DNA of 64,000 nt from Selaginella moellendorffii (lineage: Eukaryota > Plantae > Lycopodiophyta), in assembly GCF_000143415.4 (NCBI RefSeq), contig NW_003314354.1, positions 652,705 to 716,704 of the forward strand, in the 5' to 3' direction. Below the pieces are notes generated by a model. That model ran no database searches, was not told where the DNA came from, and saw only the letters and a program-made list of their open reading frames with translations. A program made the translations under genes and the position numbers. Positions 21,197 through 52,900 of this stretch are shown piece after piece; position 1 is the stretch's first letter, and each line of letters begins with the position of its first letter.

Positions 21197-23747
21197 ATGA
21201 CGAATTCCACGGAAAAAAGGGCAAATCCTCCAGTAGCTTGGTCCAGTAGGCGAGGCAGAAGTGTCGGATCTTCGCGTGGATCGAGTCCAAGCATAAGAAA
21301 CCCATCGGAGCGTGAGAAAGAGCACGCTACCATCCAGGATATTATTCGCTTGTCCAAAGAGAGGCATTACACAACGGGAAAAAAAGTTCCTTTGTTCTTC
21401 GAGCATTTGGCTTGTTTCCAAGTGAGAGCAGCAGCTGTTCAATTTCCACAAAGGTATAGTCCATGGACCCTTAGTCGCTGACCTGTAAAACAAAGAACGC
21501 AGATTCAAACTAGGATTGTCTATGGAAGATGGAAAGGATTATATGGACCTCCTGGAGCATTGTATACACAATTGCACGCAAGAAAACTGTCCAGCTCTAG
21601 AAACCATTCGGCTACAGGTACGAAACTTTCTTCTCGCTCCAAACAAGGGCACCCTTCTGCAGATAACAGCTCAAGCAACAGCCTTTCTGGAGTTGAAAGC
21701 TTGCGCTGAAGAAAGAGTGAATGAAGCAAAGGTGCTGCAAACAATTCTCGCCGATATTCCTCAAATAAAGGTTTGCTATAATTTCTGATCCAGCATACCC
21801 TCCCTTCAGTGTACTACAGGTCATTGACATGAGAGAAACTTTCAAGACAGTGGAGTTGCTTCAAGGCCGCATTCTCGATTATATGATGGAATGTGGGAGG
21901 CAAATGGCGGACAACGTGGATGTAACCGAAGAGATGGAAGCCGAAATAACTACAACTTTTAAAAGCATTTTCCCTCAAGAAAGCTGCTTGTTTTGGATGG
22001 ATCTTCCTTCAGCAGAAAAGGAACGCCAAGTTGTAGATATAGCAGCCGTTATACAAGGTGTTCGCATTTACAACAAGTAAGGCTTGAGTTTCCAAGTCAT
22101 TTGTTATTATTCAGTTTTCTTAGGCATCTGTCAAAAGGCGGAAAAACTCTTAGCCTCCCATTTGACCTCTACAAGCACGAGAAAAAAATGTTAACCGAAA
22201 AAGTGCTCCAGCTTCTTCAAATTTTGAGCGAGAGAACTCACGTCTCCGCTAGTGCCATTACACTTCACATTCACTCTCTTGGAATACAACACGTACTTAT
22301 TCAAAGACTACGAGACGAGCTTAATTACCACCTCCAAGCTTTTGCCATTCTTGAAGATTTCCAATCCTTTTTGGACGAAAGATTTGCTTTCGTAACAGAT
22401 CTTATGGACCAGTTCTCACGGAAACTAAACGTCCTTTGCGACATTATCAGCGACCGACCCTGTGTAGCAACTGAACTAGTATGATACCTAATGAATCTTA
22501 TATGTATTGACAATTTGAATCCAGGTTTTCCCGCAATTTAAAGCATTGGGAAACCTGCACAAGTCGATGCTTGAAGAGCTTCGGCTGCTTCGAGCACATC
22601 AAAGGGCTTGCAGTCCTTTTTTATCATTGGCTGCTGAGCCTCAGTTTGATTGTACTCCAACAGGGTTTGCAAACCTTTGGAAGAAAACGGGATGGACGAT
22701 AAACTATCATACGGATTGGAAAAATTCCCCTCTTGGTCTTGCAAAGCTCAAGGTTCTGATTATGTACACAACATTTTTACAAAAGGATTTGTACAATGTG
22801 ACCTGGGACGAAAACGAGGCCCTGTAAGTTCCTGAAGCTGGTAATCTGTGTTCCTATAACAAGATTTATTTTCTATTTGTCAAGCATCAAGGCGGGATCT
22901 TCCGACGAAGGGGAGGGAAGAGTGCTCACAAGTTGCGAGATTGACGCGGCATTTGAAAGTGAAAGAGAAATCCACCTTGGCGGATATTGCCCTGTCACAT
23001 TAGCAAAGTACCGTGGCCTTCTTCTTCACGGTGATCCAGACGTTGGACTGGTTGAGTTCGAAGAAAAGCTTTTTGCATTTTCGACTGAAGAGGATCTAAG
23101 GGAGTAAGTTAAAGGAAAATCGATCACATTTTGATATATTTGATACCTAGGTTTGCAAGAAGTCCTTCACTGTTTCTTAGGACGGTAGAAAACGTGGTAC
23201 ATAAAATGCCGCAGCTTGTTCACCTCTTGCGGCTTCAGCAATGCCCAAAACTTTTATCCCTTGCAATCTCTGAGGTATGTCTTCTTTGTGAAAGAAAACA
23301 ATATTTCACTATATTGCTGTAGATCATTGATCCCTCGAGTGAGCCATTTTCCTGTGAATTCTCGACTCAAACGGCCATTCACATTGGCCAGCCTCATCGC
23401 TGGACGGATGAGGCGTTTTACGAAAGGTAAAATTCTTGTGATAGTATTTGTAGCAACTTCTTTCTTTGTGAATAAATCAGGGCCTTGGAACTACAGAACA
23501 AACTCACAGACAGCACCCAAACAGAGACTTCATATTTCAAGCGAACGAGCTCCACTCAGGTTGGTTATGAATTATATGCTTTTCTGTAAGAGGCTTTTCT
23601 TTTTAGGTGTGGCTACCCAAAGAAAAATGGACTCAAACTCGGTTCAATAAAGGAACCAAAATGACACGTCATGTCAGACATCTGCATGGCCTTGTTGGTC
23701 CTCCCACCGTACAGTTTAAAATGCTTCGTACAAAATATGATGTCTAA
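21197..23747 (+). CDS. CFAP206: Cilia- and flagella-associated protein 206 (multi-exon, short introns; e.g. intron 1 21454-21502)
   Basis: Spliced motifs are collinear with CFAP206/FAP206 as I recall it: PALETIRLQV, FKSIFPQ..EKERQVVDIAAVIQGVRIYNK, ELVFPQF, GGYCPVTL..GLLLHGDPDVG....KLFAF, FARSP...PQLVHLLRL, STQT.H and STQTETSYFKRTSSTQVWLPKEKWTQT. Stop TAA at 23745-23747. Some internal splice sites are uncertain. Confidence 0.88.
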
Positions 23748-24754
23748 GTATGGAAAAGTCTCTTTCTAAGCTCCCGCTGACATCAGAAGTTAAGACATTG
23801 TCTAATACTAGATGCTTAGCTTATCTTGTACGTCCTGGCAAAGGACTTCTTCCTTATAACAATAGGCTTTCCGGCAATATCATGATCATCACCAGGGGAC
23901 TTCAAAAATTCTTGTGGTCATGTACAATGAATTCCTCAGGCTTAGTAGTGTTCCTTCGACTAACTAATGCGAACAACGTTAACAGGTATCTTTTATTGAA
24001 GTTATGATAGATTTGAAGTGCATAGTTACCTAATTTTTGCTCTCGAATTTATTTTAATTTTTTTTTAAAAAAATACAATTGATTAACTGGCATGACCCAT
24101 GAATTTCCCAGTCAAATATTTACCTGTCCAAATCGATTGCAAGCTCTCTGTTTCATCATTTGCAACAACTCGTAGGCCTGCACTTCAAAGTCTGAATGTG
24201 GCACTCTAAAGTTTCAGAGATGTTTTTAGTTGTCACATAAAACTCCACCAGGAGTGCATAGACTTCCTCCTGCGCACAGCAGCTTCCTAGAATCATATTC
24301 AATATTTGTATGATTTGAAGTGCCATTCTACCTCCATGTTGATGAGATCTGTGCTAGGGTCTTTCTTCCAGTAAGGTCTTTCTTTAGCATCATTTGAAGC
24401 TGAAAATACTTTCCTTTCGCACATGTGGTTGTCAGGGTATTCGATGTAGCTGCGCTTTTTCTAAGAGGCGGCTATAGCAACAGCAAGAAAACGCAATTGG
24501 TCCACGTAATGCTTATGTCCTCGTTTTCTTCCCTCTTCTACCATGTTTTCATTAAGTCAAGCGTGTTTCACTAATAAACCTCCTGTAAACGATGGAAACC
24601 CACACTACTGTTACATATTGAATGTTTGCAGCAAAGAGCAACTTTTCAGGTAGCAATTCTTTTACCGCAGTTGGCGGTTCAATTAGCGGAGCTCGATCCT
24701 TGCTAATATCAGCCACCCTTCGCTTAAAAGCAGTTAGAGCAGTTCACTAGCGAC

Positions 24755-26278
24755 ATGGATGCCATGCCGTTCGTCAAAATCTTTCTGAATTTGAAGCTTT
24801 TAAAGGTTGTTCTTGTGGTCTTATTGTTCACATCCCTGCTGGTCCCCACCTTGGTTATTCGAAATCTTTCCTTTGCCCATAAGAGCAGCAAAGACTGTCT
24901 ACGCTTGGGCAAGAGAGCACAATTCGTCATCAATCCTCCAATCTCAAATTCCCCTAACGCAAGAACTTGCTTGAGCAGGGAATTCCAGCAAAATTTATGG
25001 AAGGAAGTACATACCATTCCAGCTCCACTATCCAAAGCATTGAGAGAGTATGAGAAGATGCACGAGAGATGTTATCTGGGACGAAACTTAACGCAAGCTA
25101 TTTTGCATCCAGATCCCCGCGATCACTGCAGATATCTCGTTCATGCGGAAGCTGATGGCCTTGGGAACCGTCTCCTAACGTTAGCCACGGCGTTCATGTA
25201 CTCGCTGCTCACAAACCGGGTTTTCCTTGTCGATAGAAGAGGCCATCTGTCTAAGCTTCTCTGTGAGCCATTTAATCACTCGTGGCTTTTACCAGAGGAT
25301 TTCCCGTATCATCTTATTGATAAAGCGCCAAAGCTGGGAACCATAAACAACTCAGAGCTTGGTAATATTGTCCGCCTTTTCCTGGTGAACGCGGAGACAG
25401 GAGACCAGCGATTCTTTTGTCCTGAAACAAGATCCGATCTTGAGGATGTACCATGGATAATATGGGCCAGCAACTTGTACTACGTACCTCGGCTTTTTAC
25501 GTTTCCCGAGTTCTGGATGCGACTCACCATCTGGTTCCCAGACGTCTCCTTAACTTTCACACAACTAAGTAAATATTTGTTGTTACCCCAGAACCATGTT
25601 TGGCACAAGATTACTCGTCTACGTTCGTCATACTTATCTACACCTGGAAAGCAGCTTGGTATGCAGGTGCGGTTGCATCACAGAGGCGATCCAGCAGTTT
25701 TTCATCGTCCTTCACTCGAACGAATCTTGCAATGCCTTACCGAGAACAAACTATTGTCATCAGTTGTCAATGCAGACTTCGCCAAGAATAATTCCATTAG
25801 ATATGAAGAGCCAAAGAAACCGATCAAAGTAATGGTTACTTCCTTGCAAGTCAAGTACTATGAAGAGTTGAAAAACAATTTTATGAACTATCCTACTGCA
25901 GATGGAAGGCTAATAGAGGTGCACACCTTCTCTAGTGACGGAGTTCAAACCGACAGCTTAGAACAAGCTGTCAATGCCATGGTAGAAATTTGGCTTCTAA
26001 GTACGAGTGACGTGTTCGTTAGCAGTAGCTGCTCCACATTCGGATACGTGGCTCAAGCGCTGGCTGGATTGCGTCCTTACATTCTTAACATTCAAGGCGA
26101 TGACCTTGAAAACTGCGAGCTAACAGCATGCTCTGTTGGACAATCATCCGATCCCTGCAATCACTATCCTTTTTTCAGAGACTGTGAGGACTTGGAAAAG
26201 ACGAAAGCTCATTTTGAATGGGAAAAGATACACATCAAAGGCTGTCAAGACGAATGGGAAGGCATTCAGCTGGCATGA
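24755..26278 (+). CDS. FUT: Xyloglucan galactoside 2-alpha-L-fucosyltransferase family (GT37), intronless, 507 aa, N-terminal type II membrane anchor
   Basis: GLGNRLLTLATAFMYSLLTNRVFLVD, LLCEPF..SWLLPEDFP, LGMQVR, EIWLLSTSD and STFGYVAQALAGLRPYIL. Hydrophobic segment near the N-terminus. Confidence 0.95.
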   Translation: MDAMPFVKIFLNLKLLKVVLVVLLFTSLLVPTLVIRNLSFAHKSSKDCLRLGKRAQFVINPPISNSPNARTCLSREFQQNLWKEVHTIPAPLSKALREYEKMHERCYLGRNLTQAILHPDPRDHCRYLVHAEADGLGNRLLTLATAFMYSLLTNRVFLVDRRGHLSKLLCEPFNHSWLLPEDFPYHLIDKAPKLGTINNSELGNIVRLFLVNAETGDQRFFCPETRSDLEDVPWIIWASNLYYVPRLFTFPEFWMRLTIWFPDVSLTFTQLSKYLLLPQNHVWHKITRLRSSYLSTPGKQLGMQVRLHHRGDPAVFHRPSLERILQCLTENKLLSSVVNADFAKNNSIRYEEPKKPIKVMVTSLQVKYYEELKNNFMNYPTADGRLIEVHTFSSDGVQTDSLEQAVNAMVEIWLLSTSDVFVSSSCSTFGYVAQALAGLRPYILNIQGDDLENCELTACSVGQSSDPCNHYPFFRDCEDLEKTKAHFEWEKIHIKGCQDEWEGIQLA

Positions 26279-29814: not shown

Positions 29815-31440
29815 CATGATTGGGATTGATGCTATCTCATGACCAACTCGTAAGGCTTAATTCAGGAATAGGACTTATGGAGGTTGTGAATGAGACTTTT
29901 CCAAGTGGTTTAAGATGCAATTAAGCGACTAAAGTAAAATGGAAAATTTAGTTGCTTACAATTTAGTATTAAAGCTGTTCTTTAGTCTGACCCTATTAGT
30001 GGTCAAGTATATCATCATTTGACATTGACATTTAAAGGTCCCATGAGTGGGGCTATACTTGACAAGTAGTATCCCAAGAGGACATAGCTCTCCACTTTAG
30101 TTCATGCGTGAATTGGTAGGTAATATAGTGGATAGAAAAGGGGCTAATATGGGATTGATTTTGGGATCTTGGGAACAATAGAAAGTTTTACTCAAAGATT
30201 TGAGGATGTGATCTTTATAAGTGTTTGACTTAGCAGATTAGCTAATGTGGTTGTAGTAAACAACTATAGTTGGGATCACAAGAAGATAGAGACTTTGAGA
30301 TAATAAAGGAGTCGCATGATTATCCTCATATAATTGACTAGAGTTAATGACATGGGAGGTCAAATACAAATGAGGACATATATCCTAGAAATGGTATTAG
30401 GGCTATTTTTAATAGAGGCCAGAACAACCCAAGGAGTTGGGGTGTGTACTCAAAGGATGAGTTAGTGTTCTCATTATATGGAAGGATAGTTCTAAAGGGC
30501 AAAATTAGCCCATATAGAACAAACATAATCAAGTGTCAGAGTAACCCTTGTAAAGATGGTCCTTGTGAATAGAATGTGAATACAACAAGTTGTATTCAGA
30601 TGTGATGGCACCTCAAAAGTAGCTAGGAGGCTAGGAGAATACAAGGAGTCCAAGATGGAGTTTGAGGAGTACGAGATGAAGTTTGAGACTGAAATTGAAA
30701 CCGAGATTGAAATCGAGACAATTTCAAGTGTGAGTCCAAGGTCAAGTCCAAATTCTAATATAGGTCAAAGGGTGAAAGGCCAAAGTGATCGTCCCCTTTG
30801 GGGCGGGGAGGTGTAGGGGGTTCCAAAAGTATAGTAAGGAGAGTGTGGGGGTTGGACTCCAGTGGAACCAGTTTGGCAAAGAAAGGCTAGTATGACTCAA
30901 AAAGGCTACACCGATGTGGTGGTGATGATATAACCACTAAAGAGTCCAAGGTTAAAGTGAACACAGATGGAAAAGTAGGGTAACTTGGTGAAGTGTTCAA
31001 GAGCTAGTTCTAACTCCCCCGAGAGATCAAATAATCTATGCTTCTATTCCAAGTGTGAATGGCACTACCTACTTGAATACTTAGCATGGCTCATCAAAAC
31101 CTTACTCTAGCCATATAGCTAGGGCACCCAGAGGCAAAAGGTGGGGGGAGTAACCACAAGGCTTGCATTGGGTTGTGGTGTTCTGAAACGTCATCCTAGA
31201 GTCCTGGATTGTGGAAAGGAAGAGCAATCCTTTTGTGTAGTGACCAAGGATACGGTCACATGGGGAGGAAGTCCCAAAAGTCAATAGGACTTAGTGGTTG
31301 GGCATTTAGGCCCTCACTCAGTGGTGGTGTTGGTGAGCACAGCATTGGATGGAGAGGGACTTGGTGGGGATCAAAGAAGAGACATTGGGGAAGGGTGTTC
31401 TCCATATTCTCGGGCATCCTAAGGATGCTAAGGTGTGGTC
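29815..31440 (+). mobile_element. Diverged pieces of the same LTR family as the solo LTR at 48094-49944
   Basis: 29870-29960 matches the LTR 3' end (ggacttatggaggttgtgaatgagact...aatggaaaatttagttgcttaca) followed by a PBS-like tagtattaaagc. 30640-31440 matches the LTR middle (ccaaaagtatagtaagg, cttggtgaagtgttcaagag, gggcatcctaaggatgctaagg). Confidence 0.8.
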
Positions 31441-39712: not shown

Positions 39713-41281
39713 TTAGCACTTAAACCTTATCCTTATCTCTTTTGTACTCTAGCCTTCCATCATCAATGCATGTCCACATACTCAAGATCCAGAGTACTCA
39801 AGCGATGCCAAGCCTATCCTTACTCATGACCATACACATGAGCCTTCTTGGGGATCAAAGGTCTCAGATTAGTTCCTAATTTAATTGTGTGTCTGGAGAG
39901 TGAGAATTTGCAGCAGCAGCAAGTACATGCAATGATATCAACAAAGCCCTCTATTTTTCCTGTAATGATAGCAGTAACATCTCCAACAAATTCTCTCTTC
40001 TGCCTGCACAGACGTTCAGCAGCAACAATCCTTACCTAGTTTTTAGGTCTAGAGCATCTTCAGCAGGATGCACGCTTCAATGGCTTACATTGGTCATGCC
40101 TTGAGGTAGGTGAAGCTAATCATGATGTGGCTTCAGAGAAGCCAGTCAAATGGAAAAAAGCTTAGTATCTTGGCAGTCAAGAGGAGGAGTGCCCTAGGAG
40201 GAGTCTCATGTTCCCTAAAGCATAGCAGATGGCTCTAGCTTCCCAGAGGAGTCACTTGTTAGGTAGAGGGACCATGAGCAGCATTGGGACTTCCGTACTC
40301 AAGAGAGTTTCACTTGAGTTTTGCTTTGTACTTTTTGAGTCTCTAAGGGATATGGGGAATATATACAAATATTTACCAAACTCAACCTCTGTATATGCAT
40401 CTATAGATGACATGATCTAGGATAGGATGCCTGGTGTGTCTTCTCATGCACTATCTCTTCATACCAGTGCACCAATTTATATTCAACATACGCTATGGAT
40501 CACAGCTTAGGAACCTAGTTCCTTAGAACTTCTAAGTCCTCTCACTTAACAAGTTAGTTGACCAGTTTATGATCATGTATTGACTCCATGTTTTGCCCTA
40601 AAGGCCATCCCTCTTAAAATCAAGATCTTCAACTAGGGTCCTTATTCCTCCAACTTTCCAATCTCACTTAGTATGTCACTCACCCAGCATAATATGGTTT
40701 TATACATAAGCATAAAAGTCCTTAAATATCAATTTTCTTTCAAAGCTAACCCTTTGAACATGTGGGAACTACTTCTCTAACCTTGATAGCCTCACCTTCT
40801 AGCAAGCTTCAAGACCAAACTTCTACTATGCCACTCTGATTTTGCATATTTCTATAAACCATTTGCACTCGTCTTTCTAAGTAGCAACTTATCTAGAATT
40901 ATCCACCTTCTATTGCAACCTCAAGCTCGATCATAGTGTCACGAAGAGCAACAGCAGAATTGTACTACCTTAGCCCAAACAAGGTTCGTCAAAGCTTCTC
41001 CAAGCGCCAGCCTAGCCATAGCTGCAGGATTCAGCAGTCCCTGCAAATTGTCTTCAGAAAAAAGTAAAGAATTTTCAATCTACCTTGATCGGTTGTTCAC
41101 CAATAGCACAAGCAGCATGTTGCCCTTAGCAAGCTTGGACACATCCTTGACATGTCCTTGACACATCCTTGACACACACACACACAGAGCGCTTACAATC
41201 TGCCTGAATGCCCTAAGAAATTTCACTTGATTTGGAGCGTCATTAAAATCAAAATTAAAGCGTTGCCACCCTTCTGGCACC

Positions 41282-41393
41282 TGACACGAACCACGGGAAT
41301 ATTCCGAGAATATTCCATGGCCTGTGGGATTTAAGGCCGTAACGCCTTAAGGGTTGGGAGGTTGGCCTAGGGTTCGCTCTCTTGTTCGTTTCA
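41282..41393 (+). repeat. 5' LTR (112 bp)
   Basis: tgacacgaac...gttcgtttca; identical to 44504-44615 by eye. Confidence 0.97.
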
Positions 41394-41394
41394 T

Positions 41395-41406
41395 TGGTAT
41401 CGGAGC
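41395..41406 (+). promoter_or_regulatory. Primer-binding site (tRNA-iMet type)
   Basis: TGGTATCGGAGC, 1 nt after the LTR; one mismatch to TGGTATCAGAGC. Confidence 0.9.
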
Positions 41407-41423
41407 AGCACGTTCTTTTGGGG

Positions 41424-42419
41424 ATGGCGGGTGAGCAAGATATTGATCCTGATGAGGAGTATGGCGTTAGTGAGGATAGCCATGACGATGCGGAAGAGAC
41501 TCTTGATGATGTCGTTCTGCGGCAAGGACGCCAGATTTCTGCAGTTCAAAGCGACATAAAGGAGGTTAAGGATTTTGTCAATCTCATCAAGGATTTCTTG
41601 CTTCGCATGAACCCTCAAGGGTTGAATCAATCTCATGTCCGTGATTACCATTGGTACGTCAAACATGCCAAGGATTATGGTATCGTGGAATGGAAATCAT
41701 CACCGGATGTTTGTGATAGTCAAGAGGTTGCTTCTTGGTTGGAATTGTGGGAAAGTTGTTGGTCTCACAATCCTTGTGAGGATAAGGTGAAGATAGATTT
41801 CTTTGTGACGAAGCTTACGGGCCATGCTTCTTCGTGGTGGAAGAACTACATTAAAGCTAATCCGATGCCAACTTCTTGGACTGATTTGATAAAGGTTTTC
41901 TGCGCTTCGTTTGTCAAGAAGTTTGAAGAGGTTGATCTCGTGAATCAGTTGTTAGAGATCCGGCAGGGGACTTTGTCTTTGGATGCGTATGCCCGCAAGT
42001 TCCGTGATCTTTGCCTTAGTCTCACGGGCACCTATAATGAGCTGCTAAAGGTGCAATGTTTTATCAAAGGATTGAGCTCGGTGGATGTGCAGCAGAAGGT
42101 CAAGAAGGATTTTCCAGCAACATTGACTGATGCTATCACTAAGGCTCAGATCTTTTCGCCCGAACCGTCAGTCAACTCGGTCAACTCTGGTCAACGAGAT
42201 AGTCCACGGAGTAGTCAACGTGATGACCAGCTTGCTAATTCTTCATATTCGGGGAAGAAACGGTTGTTATTCCGTTGTGGCTCGAAGCATGAAGATGGCA
42301 GTGAAGCTAAGAAACTTCGTTTGGACCAGCGAGAGAAAGACAAGGCGGAGGGCAATTGTTTTCGTTGCCATAGAGCTGGACATCAGAGCAAGGATTGTTC
42401 TGAAGGGGTCAATGAATGA
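41424..42419 (+). CDS. gag: Retrotransposon Gag (capsid plus CCHC zinc knuckle), 331 aa, intact
   Basis: ATG at 41424; LTGHASSWW, IRQGTLSLDAYARKF, FIKGL and CFRCHRAGHQSKDC. Confidence 0.93.
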   Translation: MAGEQDIDPDEEYGVSEDSHDDAEETLDDVVLRQGRQISAVQSDIKEVKDFVNLIKDFLLRMNPQGLNQSHVRDYHWYVKHAKDYGIVEWKSSPDVCDSQEVASWLELWESCWSHNPCEDKVKIDFFVTKLTGHASSWWKNYIKANPMPTSWTDLIKVFCASFVKKFEEVDLVNQLLEIRQGTLSLDAYARKFRDLCLSLTGTYNELLKVQCFIKGLSSVDVQQKVKKDFPATLTDAITKAQIFSPEPSVNSVNSGQRDSPRSSQRDDQLANSSYSGKKRLLFRCGSKHEDGSEAKKLRLDQREKDKAEGNCFRCHRAGHQSKDCSEGVNE

Positions 42420-42665
42420 TAAGGTGACTGTGGTGGAAATTATAGGCAATGATGTGAGTGATAGTGCTTTTGAGGCCGTATTGCTTCAAGTTAGGCATTC
42501 TCTCGCCTTCATGAGCCACAAGTTTGATGTCACACAGCAGAATTGACCTACTCAAAAATGGCGACATTATCTATATGGATCGGACTTCCATATAGTTTTA
42601 GATCATCAGTCTCTCCAGATGTGGATCTTCGAGGCCGCCTTGCTCGTTGGCAAGAGTTCCTGTAG
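42412..42665 (+). pseudogene. Broken RNase H relic directly after gag (protease and RT absent)
   Basis: NDVSDSAFEAVLLQ..LAFMSHKF..QQN*PT, then deletion of the ELLA motif, KWRHYLYG..DHQSL, a frameshift, and RGRLARWQEFL*. Confidence 0.85.
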
Positions 42666-42668
42666 GAA

Positions 42669-44255
42669 ATGTTTGTTAAGATCCGGTACAAGCATGGAGG
42701 TGACAATAAGGTGGCTGATGTGTTATCCAGGATGGTAAATTCTATCTCGTTCGTGAAGCTATCCAGCGATCTCTTGGATGAGCTTAAGGAGTTTGCTGAC
42801 TTTGACTCCTTTATCACTAATATTCGCGCGAAAGTTTTGTTGAGGGACGCCTCTATGGATTTGAAGGGTGACAAGTTTGCGTCATTCGAAATACGAGATG
42901 GAATCCTGGTGAAGAAGGGACGTGTAGTGGTTCCTCGTGTTGACAAACTCATCAAACGGATTTTGGTTGAGTGTCATGATGTGCCAAGTGCTGGGCATCC
43001 GGGGGTATTGAGAACGTATATGTTGGTGAAGAGGCATTTCTTTTGGCCTGGGATGAAGTCAGATGTTGAGAAGTACGTACGTGGTTGCTTGACCTGCCAG
43101 GCGGTCAAAGTTGATCATCAGAAGCTCGCTGGCCTCTATCATCCTTTACGTGTACCCGAGAATAAGTGGGATAGCATCTCGATGGACTTTATCACTGGTT
43201 TGCCCAAAACCTTTCGAGGAAATGATGCTATTTGGGTTGTTGTGGATCGTTTGACGAAGATGGCTCACTGCTTCTCTGTGAAGACAACGATAAAAGCTTC
43301 TGAACTTGCTCAGTTGTTTGTAGACCGGTTATTCAGTCTCTATGGTTTGCCGGGTGACATTGTGAGTGATCGGGATCCTAAGTTCACGTCCAAATTTTGG
43401 CAAACGGTCTTTGAAAAACTAGAGACGAAACTGAGCATGAGTAGTGGTGAGCATCCACAATCTGATGGGCAGACAGAGCGCATGAATCAGCTATTAGAAG
43501 ATATGCTACGGTCTTTTGTGGGAAACTTGACTCGACAGGGAGTATGGGAAAAATACTTGCCTTTGCTTCAGTTTGCTCACAATAGCGCATATCAATCGGC
43601 TATTGGCATGTCTCCTTTTATGGCGATGTATGGTTATGAGCCTAGGTCTCCTGTGAGTTTGAATTTGGCTTTGGTTCGGGTTCCTCATGCTTGTGATTTC
43701 CTGGAGGATATGCAAGACAAGCTTGAGTTGGCAAAATTGAACATGAGGCAAGCTCAAGAACGAGACAAAAGATTGGCTGATGAGCATCGTCGTCATCAAG
43801 AGTACAAAGTTGGTGACAAGGTTTTCCTTAAGCTGTCGGATGCACAACGGTCTCTAAAAGGAGGTGGCAGTGCTAAGTTGTCTCCACGGTATTGTGGACC
43901 TTGGACAATTTTACAGCGTGTAGGGGATCTTGCATACACTTTGGACTTGCCAGTTAGTTCGAAGATTCATCCAACGTTCCATGTGAGCAAGCTTAAAGCG
44001 TGTTTGCACTCTGGTGATATCGTGGATCAGTCCATCATCCAGGTTCCAGAGATTGATGCAGAGAAGGCTGGTCCGGCCAATATTCTTGCTCAAAGATTGG
44101 TGAAAACACGCCGAAAGACAACTAGGGAGTTGTTAGTTCAGTGGAATGGTTATTCCATGGACGAAGCTACATGGGAAACGGAGGATGACATGAAGAGAGT
44201 GTTTCCGAGTTTTGGTTATGACTTGGATGACATTCCTGAGGAAGGGGAGAATTGA
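42669..44255 (+). CDS. Integrase (HHCC, DDE, GPY/F) plus chromodomain, 528 aa, intact, with its own ATG
   Basis: HDVPSAGH..CLTC; SMDFITGL, VSDRDPKF and DGQTERMN; RYCGPW..IHPTFHVSKLK; ELLVQWNGYSMDEATWE. Confidence 0.95.
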   Translation: MFVKIRYKHGGDNKVADVLSRMVNSISFVKLSSDLLDELKEFADFDSFITNIRAKVLLRDASMDLKGDKFASFEIRDGILVKKGRVVVPRVDKLIKRILVECHDVPSAGHPGVLRTYMLVKRHFFWPGMKSDVEKYVRGCLTCQAVKVDHQKLAGLYHPLRVPENKWDSISMDFITGLPKTFRGNDAIWVVVDRLTKMAHCFSVKTTIKASELAQLFVDRLFSLYGLPGDIVSDRDPKFTSKFWQTVFEKLETKLSMSSGEHPQSDGQTERMNQLLEDMLRSFVGNLTRQGVWEKYLPLLQFAHNSAYQSAIGMSPFMAMYGYEPRSPVSLNLALVRVPHACDFLEDMQDKLELAKLNMRQAQERDKRLADEHRRHQEYKVGDKVFLKLSDAQRSLKGGGSAKLSPRYCGPWTILQRVGDLAYTLDLPVSSKIHPTFHVSKLKACLHSGDIVDQSIIQVPEIDAEKAGPANILAQRLVKTRRKTTRELLVQWNGYSMDEATWETEDDMKRVFPSFGYDLDDIPEEGEN

Positions 44256-44259
44256 GTTC

Positions 44260-44482
44260 TATAGCCGTATTGCTATATGATTTGAGCCGTTTGTTCTATT
44301 CTCATTCTCTTGTTTTCCATGACCGTATTGTCATGTGAGAAAGCCGTATTGCTTTCTTTCTTTCGTGACCGTTTGTTGCGACGTTGGTGTTGCCGTTTGC
44401 ACATCTTTTCTCCATGGCCGTATTGCCTTGGACTCCCTTCATTTGAGGCTCATTTAGCTTCTCGAGGCTACCGTATGTGGCT
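44260..44482 (+). other. Array of 8 stem-loops with conserved loop CGT(A)T(T) in the element's 3' UTR
   Basis: Examples: TATAGC-cgtatt-GCTATA, CATGAC-cgtatt-GTCATG, AGAAAGC-cgtatt-GCTTTCT and TCGTGAC-cgttt-GTTGCGA. Confidence 0.85.
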
Positions 44483-44489
44483 GGGTCAT

Positions 44490-44503
44490 GAGGGAGGGGA
44501 GAA
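44490..44503 (+). promoter_or_regulatory. Polypurine tract
   Basis: GAGGGAGGGGAGAA abuts the 3' LTR. Confidence 0.92.
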
Positions 44504-44615
44504 TGACACGAACCACGGGAATATTCCGAGAATATTCCATGGCCTGTGGGATTTAAGGCCGTAACGCCTTAAGGGTTGGGAGGTTGGCCTAGGGTTCGCT
44601 CTCTTGTTCGTTTCA
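44504..44615 (+). repeat. 3' LTR (112 bp)
   Basis: Identical to the 5' LTR; followed by TSD GCACC. Confidence 0.97.
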
Positions 44616-45072
44616 GCACCTGATCTTTGCCATCTATTTGAAGGCTTTGAATTTCAACCGTTAGATTATAAACATATTCATAAATAATATTCTAAAAATG
44701 GAATAAAAGATGCTATATGCCAATAGCACGTTTAAATAAAGAGTTTGATTTGGAGCGTCATTAAAATCAAAATTGAAGCATTGCCACCCTTTTGGCACCT
44801 GATCTTTGCCATCTATTTGAAGGCTTTGAATTTCAACCGTTAGATTATAAGCATATTCATAAATAATATTCTAAAAATGGAATAAAAGATGCCATATGCC
44901 AATAGCACGTTTAAATAAAGAGTTTGATGATATGCTTATAATCTAACGGTTCAAATTGAAAAACTTCAAATAGATGGCATAGATCAAGTGCCAAAGGAGT
45001 GGCAACTCTTCAATTTTTTAATGACGATCCAAATCAAGAGAAAAAAATTAGGGCAATTGGGCAGATTGTGAG

Positions 45073-45108
<36 letters not shown>

Positions 45109-45479
45109 CTGTGTGCTGAAATTTTCTATTTGCTGCGTTTGATCGGACTGGCTGGGGACTGACGAGCCGGCCGTGCAAAAAAAGTGGCCATTTCTGTGTG
45201 GTTTTTTTCTTGCCAGGTTTAGAAGGATAAAACATTGGAGAAAGCTGGTTTTAATGCCATTGCATTAACAAGAACCTCTTTAAAGAACTAAAATTAACAT
45301 ATGTTTTTGTTTTTATTTAATGTGTATTATGTCCTTAATTGTGTTAATACTTGCTTATCTCCTTATATTATGACCAGTCTGGATTTATATTTTCAGAAAT
45401 GTATAATTAAAATATATATGAGAAAAAGAGAATTTATATCAGGGTTCTTTTGTGAAACATGCACCTTGGACATAGAAGA

Positions 45480-46461
45480 AAATTCTATATCCGCTGAACA
45501 TATTTGAAGAGCTAAATTACTCATATGGGACAAAATAAACATGGTAACCACTCATGCTTTGTGTGACATCAAGAATTGTGACACAAATTTTAGTGGTATC
45601 ACATTTGGTGACAGGGGGAGACTTTAGGCAAACCTTACCTGTTCTTCAAAGAGCTTGCCACACACAAATCATTCAAATTAGTGTTAAATCCTCACCAATA
45701 TGGTCTAAACTCCTAAAGTTCTCATTTCATATAACCTCCTAGGACATTCAGAGTACCATTAACATCCACTACTAGAGAACAATTGATAGATAATGTGTTT
45801 GAAAAACACATAGAGACAAGCAAGTAAAGCCTATTCTCACAATTTTAAATAACCTCTCTCTACAAGTAAATGACTAAGTTCTTTCAAGAATGAGCAACAA
45901 TAACATACAAGAGAATATGAGAGTAGAAACAGAATCAAATGAGAAGATGCTTGACTATCCTATGGAGTTCTTAAATTTGGTAACACTGTCTGGAATGCCT
46001 CCACATAAGCTAAACATAAAAATCAGCTGTATCATAATGCTCTTACATAATATTAACACAAATAAACTACCATAACCAAGGCTTTACCAAACGTCATTGA
46101 AGTTAAAATTTTACACAATGATATGCAGGTAAAAAAAAAAAGAATCTCTTTGAAACCAAAAAAATGGAGATATGCCATTCATTGTAAAATATTAGTAGTT
46201 CTCTCTAAGGCTTGCATTCTCTGTCACAATTTGCAAATAATAAAGACAAACACTGTAAAATATAAAGATATTCTTGCCAAGATAAGTTTTCAACCATGGT
46301 CAACTTTATGTTGCACTCTCAAGGGGAACATCAAAAGACACAAATATCTGTAGAACAATTGTGTACACAAAAACACATAGTCTATAAAAAATTCTTTAAA
46401 ATGATAATATTAAATAAAACATAATTACTATCTCTGCCAGCGGAGCTGGATTCGTTGCTAG
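45480..46461 (+). mobile_element. Helitron Pif1 helicase relic with intact 3' terminus
   Basis: GGDFRQTLPV, YPMEFLN...SGMPPHKL and GQLYVALSRG. Hairpin CCAGC-GGA-GCTGG (46437-46449), then CTAG at 46458-46461 followed by T. Similar to the copy at 16.3-17.2 kb. Confidence 0.88.
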
Positions 46462-47007
46462 TCATATATAAACCTGGTAAAGACAATATTTTTCTGAATG
46501 CATTGAATCATTAAGCTTAGTTCCAAGCAATATCGGCAATCAATTCGGACTGCTTGGAGGATGTTCGGGCTTCGTATAAAAGTGATCTATTAGTGAAGGC
46601 AATCTTGCACTGTGTGAAGTTGTCGAAGTAGAACCCTAGTAGTAAAGTGGCAAAATTTGTTAGTCGAACCAATGCGAAGCTTCACTACTCAAGATGGGCT
46701 TATATTCTATAAGCAAGAGAAATTGTATCTTCCCTCTAAGGATCTGCAACAATTGTTTCTGCGGGAACATCATGATATTCCAGCAGTGGGACATGGTGAA
46801 AAACACAAGACTCTTGCTTCATTAAAAAAGGTATTTTTCTGGTCTAATATGGAAGGTGATGTAGCGGACTATGTCTGTTCCTGCCCTATATGCCAGCAAT
46901 GTAAGCGCAGAACTAAAAAGTAGGCTAGAAAGTTGCAAGTGCATTCCAGCACCGACATGGCCATTTCAGAGTGTGACACTTGATTTCGTCACTTGTTTGC
47001 CAAAAGC

Positions 47008-47681
47008 TGTAGCGCATGTGATCATGGGATGAGATTTGGATATACTGTCACCGTGGATCCTTGGAACCTTAAGGGATAAATGGGGATAAAATAGCCACTA
47101 AGGGCTCTCTCATCAAGCAATTGCCCCTTTTCCAGTTGGCTTAAGGGGAGAGAGATAAGGTGCGCTACAATTGGTATCAGAGAAAATGGCACGGGTTTGA
47201 TTCCCATTGATTAGTGGCTACTTAAAAATATAATATACCCTTGAGCAAGGTATATTCCTACCCCTAAATTTGAAATCGTACGTATTGGACATCCATGCGT
47301 ACGTCCTTCCTCTTGTGTGGAGTATCCACGGACGAAGGTATCCACCGTGGGACTGCGGTACGGGTGGATGACTAGTTGCCTCACATGGAATAGCTGGTCT
47401 ACACAATGGAAGGATTGGTAGATTGAGTGCGGAAATGGAGGTGTTGGTTCCCCTTGGCTCAGTAGGGGTTGTTAGTCAATAGTTAATGAAGACATTGACA
47501 TCTCTGAAGGGGGGGCGAGTGTAGCGCATGTGATCATGGGATGAGATTTGGATATATTTTCACCGTGGATCCTTGGAACCTTGGGGGATAAATGGGGATA
47601 AAATAGCCACTAAGGGCTCTCTCATCAAGCAATTGCCCCTTTTCCAGTTGGATTAAGGGGAAAGAGATAAGGTGCGCTACA
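47008..47681 (+). mobile_element. TRIM (terminal-repeat retrotransposon in miniature), 674 bp
   Basis: 162-bp LTRs at 47008-47169 and 47520-47681 (6 mismatches by eye), with terminal inverted repeats TGTAGCGCA..TGCGCTACA. PBS TGGTATCAGAG, PPT gaagggggggcgag, TSD AAAGC and a 350-bp non-coding interior. Confidence 0.95.
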
Positions 47682-48093
47682 AAAGCTAAGGGTTATGATA
47701 CTTTGATGGTGGTTGTGGATTGGTTGTTGAAGATTGCACACTTTATTCCAACTGTGGGAATAGTGAATGCAAAATAAGCAGCAAAGCTCTTTTTCCATGA
47801 AGTAGTACGAGTTCATGGTCTTCCTATAGAGATGATCTCGGATAGAGATTCGAGGTTTATGGGGAAGTTTTGGGGCACACTGTTCCAACTGTTTGGTACC
47901 AAGTTGAAGTTTAGTATGGTTTATCATCCTCAAACTGATGGGCAGACCAAACGCGTGAATGCTCAAGTTGAGGATTATCTACAGTACTATGTCACAATGG
48001 ACCAATGCGATTAGGTTGAGCATTTGGACACAGCAGAAAACTATTATAACAACACATTCCACAGTGCTATAAGCTGTTCTTCATGGGAGATGC

Positions 48094-49944
48094 TGCAAGG
48101 GAATGCTCGTGGGGTGCTGTGAGACACAAAATCCCTAGGCCCCAAAGTGGAGCCGGAAGGGCGCCACATGGTAGTGGCCGAAGCGAGAGCCAAACGAGCG
48201 TAACACGTTTGGACCAAAAGCTCTGACTTGAAAAGTCAAAAGCGGGAGTGGAACTCCCAACGAAGTGCTCGAGGAACGAGCACGAAGCGAGCAAAAGGCG
48301 AGGCTCCAAAAAGGGACCTAAAAGGACCAACACATGACACATGGGAGTGTCCGAGATGGACTCGAGTTGGAGTCCGAAGTGGAGTCCGAGATGGACCCGA
48401 GTTGGAGTCTGAAGTGGAGTCCGAGATGGACCCGAGTTGGAGTCCGAAGTGGAGTCCGAGACGGACCCGAGATGGAGTCCGAGATGGAGTCCGAAGTGGA
48501 GTCCGAGGTGGACCCGAGATGGACCCGAGTTGGAGTCCGAAGTGGAGTCCGAGATGGACCCGAGATGGAGTCCGAGATGGAGTCCGAGATGGAGTCCGAG
48601 GTGGACCCGAGATGGACCCGAAATGGAGTCCGAGATGGAGTCCGAGATGGACCCGAGATGGAGTCCGAGATGGAGTCCGAGATGGAGTCCGAGGTGGACC
48701 CGAGATGGACCCGAAATGGAGTCCGAGATGGAGTCCGAGATGGACCCGAGATGGAGTCCGAGATGGAGTCCGAGATGGAGTCCGAAGTCGAGACCGAGAC
48801 CGGGACCGAGACCGAGACCGAGACCGAGATCGGGACCGAGACCGAGGCCGAGGCCGAGACCGAGCCCGAGCCCGAGTCCGAGTCCGAATCCGAGTCCGAG
48901 TCCGAGTCCGAGTCCGAGTCCGAGTCCGAGTCCGAGTCCGGAGCCTGAGAGGGTGAAAGCCCAAAGCGTTCGTCTCCCAGACCCTGGGGGGTTTGGTGAG
49001 CTCCAAAAGTATAGTAAGGGGGAGGACTGCAGTGGAGCCAGTTTGGCCAGGAAAGGCCAGTTTGGCCCAGGAAGGCCGGACCCAGTGTTGGGTGATGAGC
49101 TGCCCACTGGGAAGTCCAAGACTAGAGTGAACACAGACCGACAAGCGGGGTAGCTTGGTGAAGTGTTCAAGAGCCGGCTCTAGTTCCCCCGGGAGATCGA
49201 CTGGCCGATGCTCCCAGTCCAAGTGTGGGTGGCACTACCTACTTGGATACCTGTCGTGGCTCAACGGAACCCGCTCTAAGCCCATGGCTAGAGCACCCAA
49301 GGACAGAAGGCGAGGAGAGTACCCAGGTGGCTCGCGTAAGGCCACGGTGTTCCGAAATGTTGTCCTAAAGGCCCAGACTGTGGAAAGGAAGAGGAGCAGT
49401 CCTCTGGGGTAGTGACCAAGGACACAGTCGTGGGGTGAGGAAGTCCCAGAGGGCCGTGGGACTTAGTGGTCGGGCCCGTGGGTCTCGATCCAGTGGCAGT
49501 GTTGGCAAGCACGGCCAGGGGCAGGAAGGGACTTAGTGGGGACTGACAGAGGGACATTGGGGAAGGCTATTCCCCTTGTCGGTGGGCATCCTAAGGATGC
49601 TAAGGAGTGGATCTGAGATGACCACTCACGGATGGTTTGCCTAGTCTTGGAGAGCCAAGACGGTGATGCAAGTGGTATTGGACTACCAGTGTGGCAAAGG
49701 TGATTGGGCATGGCCTTAGCGTAACGGGCTGCTATGTCGGTGGTACCTTTGAGTGTCGGTCATGGGATCGGACACGTGGTGCACTTGGACCAAGTGCAAA
49801 TGTTGAGTGGCATGGATGCCATTCACGGGGCTAGCAAGTCCCAAGTCCTGGATTGGACTTATGGAGGTTGTGAATGAGACTCCTCCAAGTGGTCAGAGGT
49901 GTGGTTAAGTGACTAAAGTAGAATGGAAAATTTAGTCGCTTACA
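48094..49944 (+). mobile_element. Solo LTR (~1.85 kb)
   Basis: Ends tgcaaggga...tcgcttaca, near-TSD GATGC/GGTGC, interrupts the host integrase; homologous pieces lie at 29.8-31.4 kb. Confidence 0.8.
48345..48945. repeat. Hexamer-based satellite (gagatg/gagtcc/gagacc variants) inside the solo LTR
   Basis: About 600 bp of 6/12-bp periodicity with higher-order blocks, ending in pure (gagtcc)n. Confidence 0.95.
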
Positions 49945-52900
49945 GGTGCCTCAACAGATTGTTGTACCAAAACCAATGTTCGAAGTGTTGGTCCCAGCTG
50001 TTGAGACTTATGCGGAGTAGCTACGCCAAGGTTGGTCTAGAGCTACTAAGGTGATGGGCAAAGCTCAGAATAGGTATCGATGTGATAAGGATCAGCATTG
50101 TTAGAATGTGTGCTATCAAGTGGGAGATCAGGTGTGGCTATCTTCCCAAAACCTAAATGTTAAGGGATCTTTATCCTGGAAGTTGTTACCATGATATGTC
50201 GGGCCTTATCGGGTATTAGCATGAGTTGGTGATGTATCCTACAAGCTGGATCTTCTGGATGAGTTGTCCCATATACATGATGTATTTCATGTTAGTTTAC
50301 TAGCACCATATTGTGTTGATGTGGATCACTCTATAGACATTCATCCCCCTCCAGAAGTTGTGCATGGTGACCTTGAGTATGAGGTTGAGGCAATTCTCTT
50401 GTCCCGCAAAGCTCATGGTGGTCATTCCAAGGAATATCTAGTTAAGTGGAAAGGTTACCCGACTTGTGAATCAACTTGGGAACCTCTTCAAAATCTTTCA
50501 CATGCTTGTGAGCTTGTCACGGAGTATGAGAATAGTAATAAAGACTAGTTTTTGTAAACTTTGTAATAAATCTTACAAATCAATAAAGTAATATATTTCT
50601 ATAAATCAAAGTTTTGTGTCTCTCATTCGTTAGTATTTGGGTCAGTTTTGGCAGGCTGACTTTGGCACTTTGGTGCATGGGTCTAATCTATAAATATGGG
50701 GATAACTATTATTGACTGATCACAAGTCCCCGCCTCTCTCTTGATGACTCATTTTTGAAAAGGGGCGTGGTTGTGTAAACAATTTAATCTGCCAGTTTAT
50801 AATAGTTTTCTGAATCTTCCCGACGGGGTTGATTTCTTGCTCAGGGGAAGTTGGGCCTCTGGCCCTCTCCCTATGTCCATGCAAGCAGGGATGTATCATT
50901 CCTTTGTAAGCTAAGTGGTACTTGGAGCAACAAAGGGGCTAACTCTATTAGTCATTTCCTTGTCAGTGATGGCCGGAAGGTGTCTGAGTCTTAACGTCTT
51001 TGGACGTAAAGGAGAGGTCATTCCATAACTCATTTAAATTAGTGTGTTTCCCACATAGTGTGCTTTCCATTAACTTTCGGAGTTGTTTCCTTGACGGTTT
51101 GCTAGACTTGGGTATGCATCGACAAGGACGTTAATCTTCCCCAAAGGCGGGGAGAGTGTCGCAAATGTGACTTCGGGTATCAAAGGATACTTGTCGGCCA
51201 ATCCTTACGAACACTCTTTCCTTACTGCTATGACGGCAAGAGGTCGGTATAGTTGGTTCCCTTTATCGTTCCCACTTGGGCTATGGCTGTTTGTATCTAA
51301 GGGTTTCATGTTTGACTCTCTCTCGTGTCACTGTACAGAATTGGGAACGAAACAAGGAGAGTGAGCTCCTTGATTCTTCACTGTCGATAAGTTTCTTTCT
51401 CGCGTTTTTCACAGTTGTATCACCACTGTTCTGAGTCTCCAGAATATATACCTTTGGAATGGGTATGTGTATGATTTATGGTCTTTGCAATGTCGTTTGA
51501 ATGTGTTTGCATAAGAACAGGTCATGAGTACTGGGAAGATGAAGGCATTGAAGAAAAAAAGCCAGCATGTAGGCAAATGATGAACATATTTCACCCATAT
51601 GATCCTGTCACCTATAGGTATCAATATACTTCTGTGTGAGCAGTGTTTACATTTATCCTTTCGTCCTGATTATAGAGTGGAACCTCTGATATCTATTCTT
51701 TTTGGAGAAAGTCAGTGAATATCTTGGGATACAGGTAATCATAGTGCTTTGTAAGTTTTGCTGTCAAAGCTAGAGGAAATTCTTCAGTTGGGGTATGGCA
51801 ATTATTGTGACACACTAGGTAGGATCCAATCCAACATCACCAACTCGCAGAAAAAGAGAGAACTAAGAAAGACAAACAAAGAATAGTGACCATCGCCATA
51901 TCTACATGTCTGAGGACAAATTAAGTGAATTGGTGCCAGATTCAATTGTATTTGTGTTGTAATACTACATTATTTATAAAGTGTCTCCTGCCTTTGACTG
52001 TCTAGAAGTTCCAATGGTAAAGCCAATTTCATGCTACAGGTAAGTCGGAATCATAGCAGCAGCAGCAGCAGCAGCAGCGAGAAGATCTCAAGGTCGCACA
52101 AGAATTCTCCACCAGGGATTTCTCACATGTACATAGTGGCAAAGCCAGTGTCGGTGAGCAGGTTGGTGCGAGGGACAGGGATGAAGATCTCAGGAGGGAC
52201 AGGGAAAAAGATCTTGTAGGGTCCACCATTGCCCACAATCAGCGGAATATGTTTTTCAAGCTTCCCAGAGGAAGACTCAAGTCTAGAGAAAAACGGTAAA
52301 GAAGTTTTCTTTCATCATTCACTCTGCTAACTTTGATATATCTGCTAACTAGAGATGGAAGGATTGAAGAGGAAGCTCATGAGCATCCAATGGCAGCTTC
52401 AATCCAGCCTGAGATAGGTATGATGGAAATTCACGAAGATGTAAAGAACTTTGGTTTTGTTCGTTTCCATTTCTTCCAGTTTGAAGAGTTTGTGGCAATT
52501 TGGTAGAGACCAAACTTTGAGACGCTGCCATATCCTTACTGCCCTCCTCACATCACCAAACCAAAGGTATTGATCTTTTTTCTTCGTTACTCATAACTCT
52601 TTTGTATGATCTTCTCATTTCTTTTATTATTTCTTGTGTCAGGAGTGTAGGAAGTTCTGCAGGGGTCTCCTCCCTGAAAGACAATACTTTACTGTTTCAA
52701 AGAGTCTCAAACTGCTGCCAGTTCCATTGTTTGAGCTCTACGACAATGTATGTAAGAGAAGAAACGTTTAATATCTACACTCGCTTCTTTTTTTTTTCTT
52801 TTCTTGCTTTGAGAAAGTTTTTCTCCTCCTTTGCTGATGTGAGAATCGTTACTGCAGAGATATTCCCAGTGATCTCTGCCATCTTCTAGCAGCTTTCAAG

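Follow-up and report, generated by a model that had tools for sequence, protein, structure and literature searches.

Hairpins with a shared loop and unrelated stems lie between integrase and PPT in a Selaginella chromovirus derivative

The window analyzed here, a stretch of 64,000 nucleotides of Selaginella moellendorffii DNA (NCBI RefSeq assembly GCF_000143415.4, contig NW_003314354.1, positions 652,705 to 716,704 of the forward strand), contains a 3334-bp chromovirus derivative with gag and an integrase-chromodomain gene. The derivative is non-autonomous and comprises the following parts:

41277-41281, + strand: 5' copy of the target-site duplication GCACC, read directly; the 3' copy is at 44616-44620
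41282-41393, + strand: 5' LTR of 112 bp, TG...CA, 100% identical to 44504-44615
41395-41406, + strand: PBS TGGTATCGGAGC, starting one base after the 5' LTR
41424-42419, + strand: gag, 331 aa, with a C-terminal CCHC zinc knuckle (Pfam Retrotrans_gag, Ty3_capsid)
42420-42668, + strand: non-coding remnant, from alignment with two other genomic copies, L004 and L002, where the stretch encodes RNase H
42669-44255, + strand: integrase ORF, 528 aa, with C-terminal SH3 and chromodomain (Pfam Integrase_H2C2, rve, SH3_Tf2-1, Chromo)
44490-44503, + strand: PPT GAGGGAGGGGAGAA, abutting the 3' LTR and invariant in all copies
44504-44615, + strand: 3' LTR of 112 bp, 100% identical to the 5' LTR

With its LTRs and target-site duplication, its Gag and its integrase-chromodomain, the element has the hallmarks of a Ty3/gypsy chromovirus except autonomy. 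Pfam finds neither a protease nor a reverse transcriptase in the window copy, and RNase H persists only as the remnant. At a deletion junction (about 42438-42457) the end of gag meets the middle of RNase H, with protease, reverse transcriptase and part of RNase H gone; the integrase ORF lies in the gag frame, separated from gag by many stops. Gag is 95% identical to the S. moellendorffii protein P0121. The 5' UTR measures only about 30 nt and is essentially the PBS, and TGGTATCGGAGC resembles what we take to be the initiator-tRNA-Met PBS of plant Ty3/gypsy elements; no tRNA gene is present in the window. The 3' LTR contains a palindrome resembling an HSE (GAATATTC-cga-GAATATTC, 44519-44537), a TATA-like ATTTAAGG and a hairpin that is described below; AATAAA is absent from its 112 bp. 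Because the LTRs are identical and the target duplication is intact, the insertion is recent.

The integrase-chromodomain stop and the PPT are separated by 234 nt (44256-44489). A first-pass annotation, made from the sequence alone, had placed an array of stem-loops here, in the 3' UTR of an LTR element, and the location between pol stop and PPT is borne out. On the + strand, positions 44260-44482 hold eight hairpins (H1 to H8), each with a closing C-G pair and a loop of CGUAUU, CGUUU or CGUAU. The array as annotated stands, and further members were found outside it, at 42469-42490 (Hint), 44552-44573 and 41330-41351 (HLTR, one per LTR):

44260-44277, + strand: H1, TATAGC-cgtatt-GCTATA (scripted motif scan)
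44284-44296, + strand: H2, GAGC-cgttt-GTTC, 4 bp, the weakest unit
44318-44335, + strand: H3, CATGAC-cgtatt-GTCATG (scripted motif scan)
44337-44358, + strand: H4, GAGAAAGC-cgtatt-GCTTTCTT (scripted motif scan)
44363-44381, + strand: H5, TCGTGAC-cgttt-GTTGCGA, two G.U
44386-44405, + strand: H6, GGTG(T)TGC-cgttt-GCACATC, with a bulged T
44411-44432, + strand: H7, TCCATGGC-cgtatt-GCCTTGGA, one internal T.T
44446-44462, + strand: possible ninth, degenerate unit, GAGGC-tcattta-GCTTC, paired by RNAfold, with arms as in Hint and a different loop
44466-44482, + strand: H8, GGCTAC-cgtat-GTGGCT, two G.U
42469-42490, + strand: Hint, an extra hairpin within the RNase H remnant, TTTGAGGC-cgtatt-GCTTCAAG, 8 bp with 2 G.U
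44552-44573, + strand: HLTR, TTTAAGGC-cgtaac-GCCTTAAG, with its twin at 41330-41351 matched by the hairpin covariance model

We scanned for C-[CGTATT/CGTTT/CGTAT]-G and then extended the flanks as pairs outward from the closing pair. All eight hairpins of the first-pass annotation were recovered in place with their arms and loops, with the qualification that H6 requires the bulged T and H7 contains the T.T. Contiguous stems of the eight units range from 3 to 8 bp, and H6 and H7 reach 7-8 pairs if the bulge and the T.T are allowed. Inside the element the motif occurs nine times on the + strand (eight times in the array and once as Hint); the remaining ~60 kb of the window yield six occurrences on both strands, whose stems never exceed 3 bp. 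The octamer CCGTATTG is present eight times. Units are mostly spaced by 21-25 nt, with two longer gaps (full range 21-36 nt), the linkers between them are 70-100% pyrimidine, and H8 ends 7 nt before the PPT. The sequence that the units have in common is the 8-nt loop core only. TRF (43000-46000, minimum score 30) found no tandem repeat in the array, only microsatellites, so, as had been claimed, the array is not a simple tandem repeat, but a rough 21-25-nt period is present. Some residual sequence kinship is seen between H3 and H7 and between Hint and the degenerate unit.

Since folding energy is only modest and about equal on both strands, the weight of the case lies on the shared loop in combination with unrelated, complementary stems. 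Ten hairpins (the eight array units, Hint and HLTR) were aligned on their loops, and pairs were counted for an 8-bp helix. The stem cells are paired in 86.3%, against 61.1 +/- 4.2% when the 3' letters are shuffled, and the covariation score is 0.82, against 0.31 in shuffles; neither value was reached in 500 shuffles. Changes on both sides are seen for seven of the eight stem pairs, and sliding the partners by 1-3 columns reduces pairing to 34-48%. The non-Watson-Crick stem cells comprise 12 G.U and no A.C. As all 12 would be mismatches if the opposite strand were folded, the folding strand is the + strand, the one that carries gag and integrase in sense orientation. Two claims of the first-pass annotation, that the stems are unrelated but complementary around a common loop and that the exceptions to Watson-Crick pairing are mostly G-U on the plus strand, thus hold.

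Thermodynamics alone gives only modest support for the array. The RNAfold z-score against shuffled controls is -2.4 on the + strand, but it is -2.3 on the - strand as well. Hairpins with a stem of at least 6 and a loop of 5-6 number six, against 2.2 +/- 1.5 in dinucleotide shuffles (43 of 2000 reach six). In a 517-nt context, H2, H3 and H8 have low ensemble probability owing to competing long-range pairs.

The covariation is among paralogous hairpins of one element, and it is in this sense that the stems covary as claimed; across copies the data are thin. Among five closely related copies, one double change and three wobble-mediated changes are shared by several of them with the pairs kept: in H5 an A-U became G.U and a G.U became G-C, in H8 an A-U became G.U, and a double change from C-G to U-A in H5 is common to L002 and L003b. 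As a covariation test, these four events in closely related copies are weak. Changes in the old copies (L002, L003b and L004 22600-25543) are mostly CpG decay, for which reason these copies were excluded as covariation evidence.

The ten hairpins were made into a covariance model, which was run on both strands of the window and six further loci, 146 kb in total. It returned 40 matches at E <= 10, all on the + strand and all at homologous positions of family copies, with Hint as the top score; none fell in gag or integrase coding sequence or in other transposons of these 146 kb. Downstream of the integrase in other gypsy elements (window 46678-50482; L003 5036-6442), no hairpins with a shared loop were seen. 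Two kinds of pairing partner for the hairpins were considered and rejected. Kissing or cyclization finds no counterpart, as the loop is not self-complementary and its complement AATACG occurs once, in integrase coding sequence, away from the 5' end. The loop could in principle pair with a tRNA 3' end, or the LTR with a tRNA body, but with the tRNA sequence that we presume this was judged to be at chance level.

Further copies came from loci fetched via four annotated S. moellendorffii proteins, and the best protein matches are S. moellendorffii gene models. The copies, with their identity to the window element, are:

L003 6859-10184 (L003a): full second derivative copy, 96.7%
L001 4725-7535: truncated copy, 97.9%
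L002 5734-7940: older copy, 88%
L003 145-894 (L003b): older 3' part, 90%
L004 7676-16040: autonomous-type copy, 89-91%

The autonomous-type copy has the order gag, protease, a 3525-N assembly gap at the position of reverse transcriptase, RNase H, integrase and chromodomain; its gene model, found by an exhaustive representative protein search, has 1039 aa. The same eight-unit 3'UTR is present in this copy as well as in L002 and L003b. Because the autonomous relative has it, the array is a family trait that was inherited and not invented by the defective form. The element in the window was rightly called non-autonomous, being without protease, reverse transcriptase and most of RNase H, but the array is not special to it.

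Hint is different in this respect. In L004 and L002 its region is RNase H coding sequence (...AIRAVLLQ...) with ATTAGAGC as the 5' arm, which pairs over 4 bp, a mismatch and 2 bp, while the three derivative copies have TTTGAGGC and eight contiguous pairs. The step from ATTAGAGC to TTTGAGGC takes three substitutions in 8 nt, two of which create pairs (A.G to T.G; A.C to G-C), the third turning an A-T into G.T. It is suggestive, not proof, that these changes, in a region without a coding role, may reflect selection for one more unit.

How strongly the 3'UTR is constrained was estimated from one pair of young derivative copies, the window copy and L003a. The RNase H remnant is the most diverged segment of this pair (21/249 positions differ, 8.4%), followed by gag (35/996, 3.5%), integrase (46/1587, 2.9%) and the 3'UTR (4/248, 1.6%). 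Against L003, Nei-Gojobori estimates are dN 0.021, dS 0.099 and dN/dS 0.21 for gag, and dN 0.014, dS 0.069 and dN/dS 0.19 for integrase; values near 0.2 imply that the copies diverged largely in active lineages under selection. In the same comparison of window copy and L003a, change in the 3'UTR is 4-6 times slower than at synonymous sites or in the remnant (Fisher p = 0.0007, 3'UTR versus remnant), and none of the four 3'UTR differences falls within the 149 hairpin nucleotides (p about 0.025). The young copies have all 12 array CpGs intact, eight of them in loops; dead or old copies lose loops through C-to-T and G-to-A changes at CpG. For this one pair of copies, the pattern indicates purifying selection on the 3'UTR.

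Outside Selaginella, the nearest integrases are 47-51% identical and stem from one ENA plant-containing assembly. Among relatives that are close by integrase, L005, L006 and L246 have the PPT directly after the pol stop and no 3'UTR, and in an Adiantum element (L248) pol stop and PPT are about 20 nt apart. The clade as a whole therefore does not require the array and can dispense with it. In an element of the fern Ceratopteris richardii (L247), whose integrase is 46% identical, the 3'UTR measures about 220 nt and contains four hairpins at 4025-4157:

TCTACTT-tccagtttt-AAGTAGA
ATCATGTTCT-tcaagatct-AGAATATGAT
TTTACTT-tcaagttct-AAGTAAA
CATGTTCT-tcaagtttt-AGAACATG

They comprise two unrelated stem types, in two duplicated pairs, with a common 9-nt loop TCmAGwTyT; pairing is 100%, and in this single copy six of seven pairs are changed on both sides. 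Like its Selaginella counterpart, the row extends between pol stop and PPT and combines unrelated stems with a shared loop; unlike it, the 9-nt loop is unrelated to CGUAUU and there are only four units. We treat this apparent recurrence of the same design with another loop, seen in one copy of a second element, as a lead and not a result; it fits a family-specific loop code. A screen of metagenome and viral contigs for pairs of CCGTATTG within 6-30 nt gave, among the matches listed, chance matches and no array with differing stems; the only repeats among the matches listed were two simple tandem repeats (L102, L195).

We regard it as solid that the array is a selected, structured, plus-strand part of the element's sense RNA that is made of repeated modules. 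The loop is the conserved and presumably recognized part of the module, while the stem would only have to pair. A conserved loop on a variable paired stem is what characterizes hairpins that bind protein, and its repetition implies multivalent binding. The array therefore appears to be a docking signal for protein, kept by selection in the element's RNA. Multivalent binding by Gag/NC, for packaging, is our leading guess as to the protein and the purpose. We hold it tentatively, with a host factor as a close rival. The readings offered in the first-pass annotation (Gag binding, co-packaging of a helper's reverse transcriptase, localization) are likewise candidates that the observations do not set apart from a host-factor role.

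On this packaging model, about eight short hairpins, spaced by 21-25 nt with pyrimidine-rich linkers, would each present C-G-U-(A)-U-(U), and every hairpin would probably be one docking site of the same RNA-binding protein, so that the row would allow multivalent and cooperative binding. The candidate reader is the element's own Gag, whose basic region and one CCHC knuckle would make the contact, and its binding would mark the RNA for encapsidation in virus-like particles. The array would have come from an autonomous chromovirus and been kept intact in a deletion derivative with only gag and integrase, which could by this means enter particles that also hold the helper's protease and reverse transcriptase. 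Three steps here, the binding of a protein to the hairpins, the identity of this protein as Gag, and packaging as the result, are each inferred from sequence and predicted structure.

Gag/NC is favored because it is the sole partner present in hundreds of copies per particle, because, the 3'UTR aside, the autonomous form has no sizeable non-coding RNA and its 5' leader offers no room, and because the loop differs between families, as expected of a co-evolving reader encoded by the element. Precedents also favor it: conserved-loop hairpins such as GACG tetraloops function in retroviral packaging (PMC516450), and many RNA viruses are packaged through multiple stem-loops with a common coat-protein recognition motif (PMC6281560). 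Counting against packaging, the loop sequence shows no tie to Gag over a host protein or reverse transcriptase, and L005, L006, L246 and the Adiantum element must package without a 3'UTR. The position of the array also speaks against this reading, since the packaging signals of retroviruses and Ty1 are 5'-proximal, not 3'.

The close rival has the hairpins and pyrimidine-rich linkers recruit a host RNA-binding protein, with whose help the full-length transcript would be exported from the nucleus, stabilized, translated or processed at its 3' end, either in the manner of the transport and post-transcriptional elements that simple retroviruses carry near the 3' end or as an upstream enhancer of poly(A) site use. 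The array is well placed for the latter, directly upstream of a short LTR without AATAAA and once per transcript, as would be needed to favor the poly(A) site of the 3' LTR. The pyrimidine content of the linkers suits such a factor, the evidence from structure and constraint serves it equally, and close relatives manage without the array, as expected of an accessory enhancer. The lack of any Rfam match, known transport elements included, weakens this explanation, and a loop that is family-specific and different in the fern suits a co-evolving, element-encoded partner better; we consider a host factor possible, if somewhat unlikely. A role in reverse transcription, in which the hairpins beside the PPT attract reverse transcriptase/RNase H or make it pause and so aid PPT primer definition or strand transfer, would account for the 7 nt between H8 and PPT and for the retention of the array in an element that relies on a helper's reverse transcriptase. 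It would be comparable to the 3' stem-loops recognized by LINE reverse transcriptases, and in stringent LINEs the enzyme does recognize a stem-loop in the 3'UTR (PMC5135761). However, eight to ten copies are far above the need of priming or pausing, extra copies are found ~2 kb upstream (Hint) and inside the LTR, and LTR elements are primed by a tRNA at their 5' PBS and not from the 3' end, all of which makes this role doubtful.

The array might also be a neutral by-product, a hairpin unit amplified by template switching and then left to drift, at what is a known hot spot of tandem duplication between pol and PPT in plant Ty3/gypsy elements. Its position matches that of the hypervariable 3'UTR repeats described for plant elements (PMC7004042; PMC6317226), and the rough period of the units, the kinship retained by H3/H7 and Hint/degenerate unit, and the sporadic presence or absence of arrays among relatives would all be consistent with such an origin. 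Yet drift would ruin pairing, and what is seen is seven of eight pairs changed on both sides, 86% of stem cells paired and G.U as the mismatches. Compared with synonymous sites and the neighboring remnant, the 3'UTR moreover evolves 4-6 times more slowly; active copies have kept every one of the hypermutable CpG loops, and TRF detects no repeat. A duplication hot spot thus probably explains the origin of the row, not the retention of pairing, loops and CpGs, and the view of the whole as a neutral by-product is already strained and, in our estimation, very doubtful. Finally, the signal could act as DNA, with CCGTATTG and CCGTTTG (complement CAAACGG) as transcription-factor sites or with the palindromes forming cruciforms. 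The eightfold octamer and the AACGG cores in the three CGTTT units, which we take to be Myb-like, are in line with this idea. A factor that reads the core would leave the variable palindromic flanks unexplained, though, and tolerance of G.T in the absence of A.C speaks for a fold of the single + strand and not for duplex DNA; a site upstream of the 3' LTR is also unable to drive the element's own transcription. We find a DNA-level role hardly credible.

We rate the array as a structured cis-acting RNA signal of a retroelement, and the first-pass annotation's statement that it knew of no described equivalent is upheld by the searches made. Rfam 15 gave no match to 44256-44503 at E <= 10 beyond a chance-level Xist_exon4 (14.5 bits versus a gathering score of 100, E = 7.4), and a scan of 41000-45000 placed nothing on the array. 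Weak matches to miRNA families in the latter scan fall on a flanking fold-back element. In the full-text literature we found no plant LTR retrotransposon described with such an array, subscription literature and Repbase lying outside the scope of the search; the 'plant' of the first-pass annotation is here a lycophyte.

Several known systems are nevertheless similar in part. The GACG-tetraloop hairpins of gamma- and alpharetroviral packaging/dimerization regions likewise combine several differing stems with a conserved loop and act in cis on genomic RNA (PMC516450). The Selaginella array differs from them in its loop, CGU(A)U(U), in its 8-10 copies as opposed to two, in its position in the 3'UTR by the PPT instead of the 5' leader, and in its host, a plant chromovirus; its loop, not being self-complementary, gives no evident kissing interaction. 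The non-autonomous VL30 also uses GACG hairpins and is a defective element that rides in the particles of a helper. The packaging signals of single-stranded RNA viruses and the like (MS2, STNV, parechovirus, HBV pgRNA) likewise consist of many stem-loops with varied stems and one loop motif, which the capsid protein binds cooperatively (PMC6281560). These signals are dispersed over the genome, whereas the Selaginella units form one 220-nt row, with one further member in the RNase H remnant, one in the LTR and none in coding regions.

The hypervariable repeats between pol and 3' LTR in Ogre, Tat and Retand elements are likewise family-specific and lie just upstream of the PPT (PMC7004042; PMC6317226); they are recognizable sequence repeats of non-chromoviruses for which no structure is reported. 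Both they and the Selaginella array probably arise by unit duplication, but in the lycophyte chromovirus the sequence identity of the units is lost while pairing and loop are kept. Simple retroviruses and IAPs have structured, sometimes duplicated cis elements (CTE, RTE, RSV direct repeats) downstream of the last ORF and ahead of the 3' LTR. These have long irregular stems with internal loops, unlike the rows of small hairpins, without Rfam match, in Selaginella. The LINE 3' stem-loop, in turn, consists of just one conserved hairpin, placed at the very 3' end, as opposed to eight units upstream of PPT and LTR.

In its most far-reaching form, the packaging model would make the hairpin rows between pol and PPT of lycophyte and fern chromoviruses an encapsidation code, with each Gag reading its own loop (CGUAUU in Selaginella, UCAAGUUUU in Ceratopteris) and a parasite with only gag and integrase keeping the code and even adding to it. 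We consider this version unlikely as a whole. If true, it would give plant Ty3/gypsy elements their first defined packaging signal, and at the same time a multivalent hairpin tag of natural origin.

LTR retrotransposons make up most of many plant genomes, and their cis-acting RNA signals are almost unknown beyond PBS and PPT. The array is a compact and testable candidate for such a signal, with a 22-nt module, an obvious loop mutant and a Gag encoded by the element itself. If the loop is a protein address, the array would be a natural counterpart of the engineered MS2/PP7 hairpin arrays. The combination of a young element with autonomous and gag-and-integrase-only forms of the family could show how defective LTR elements stay mobile.

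Outside the element, the window contains a gene-like open reading frame and several repeats:

24755-26278, + strand: intact 507-aa open reading frame matching xyloglucan fucosyltransferase (PF03254, E = 2e-77)
30848-31438 and 49018-49610: direct repeats of ~590 bp, 72-75% identical, separated by 18.17 kb
46678-48101 and 49985-50482: integrase fragments of a degraded Ty3/gypsy element
48293-48803: GC-rich array (57%) with 12/23-nt periodicity

The fucosyltransferase frame looks like a normal gene of the plant host. In the GC-rich array, a 185-nt reference recurs as 18 overlapping copies. The array sits within the degraded element marked by the integrase fragments, and the long open reading frames that run through it on both strands (48067-49222) have no match in Pfam. 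The ~590-bp direct repeats may derive from a large nested element, as its old LTRs, or represent a dispersed repeat present in two copies.

The insertion target of the non-autonomous element was a fold-back, MITE-like repeat (44616-45017 and 41230-41281), with the following internal structure:

44769-44856 and 44930-45017: inverted arms, 88 nt, 89% complementary
44611-44749 and 44790-44928: 179-bp direct duplication (97%)

This repeat gives weak, sub-threshold Rfam matches to plant MIR families, such as MIR7533, which scores 61 bits where the gathering score is 230. In the element itself, gag (41424-42419) and the integrase frame (42669-44255) share a common frame with at least nine in-frame stops between them; despite these stops, the integrase frame is open over 528 aa, with a dN/dS of about 0.19 between copies.

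The S. moellendorffii locus that carries the autonomous-type relative (L004) also holds, at 22600-25543, a copy with heavy CpG decay (~75% identical). Its parts are ordered 3'UTR end-PPT-LTR-PBS-gag, which may reflect a tandem or recombinant arrangement with one LTR in common with a truncated upstream copy.

A hairpin array also occurs in a chromovirus of Ceratopteris richardii (L247):

CM035411.1, 4025-4157: four hairpins, between the pol stop and the PPT

These combine two unrelated stems with a common 9-nt loop, TCmAGwTyT, and the loop 9-mer recurs without a stem at the end of the open reading frame (~3978-3986). The closest non-Selaginella integrases are contained in ENA assembly ERZ26858887, labelled as a 'metagenome'. 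In one of its contigs (L246, 1-972) a PPR-repeat gene adjoins the chromovirus element, and the contigs with these integrases are therefore plant nuclear DNA.

Both LTRs of the element contain promoter-like motifs:

41297-41315 and 44519-44537: palindrome GAATATTC-cga-GAATATTC, resembling a heat-shock element

The palindrome comprises two perfect nGAAnnTTCn units and is also able to fold as a 9-bp hairpin; a TATA-like ATTTAAGG lies ~13 nt 3' of it. Together, the heat-shock-element-like units and the TATA-like motif suggest that a stress-inducible promoter is possibly present within the 112-bp LTR.
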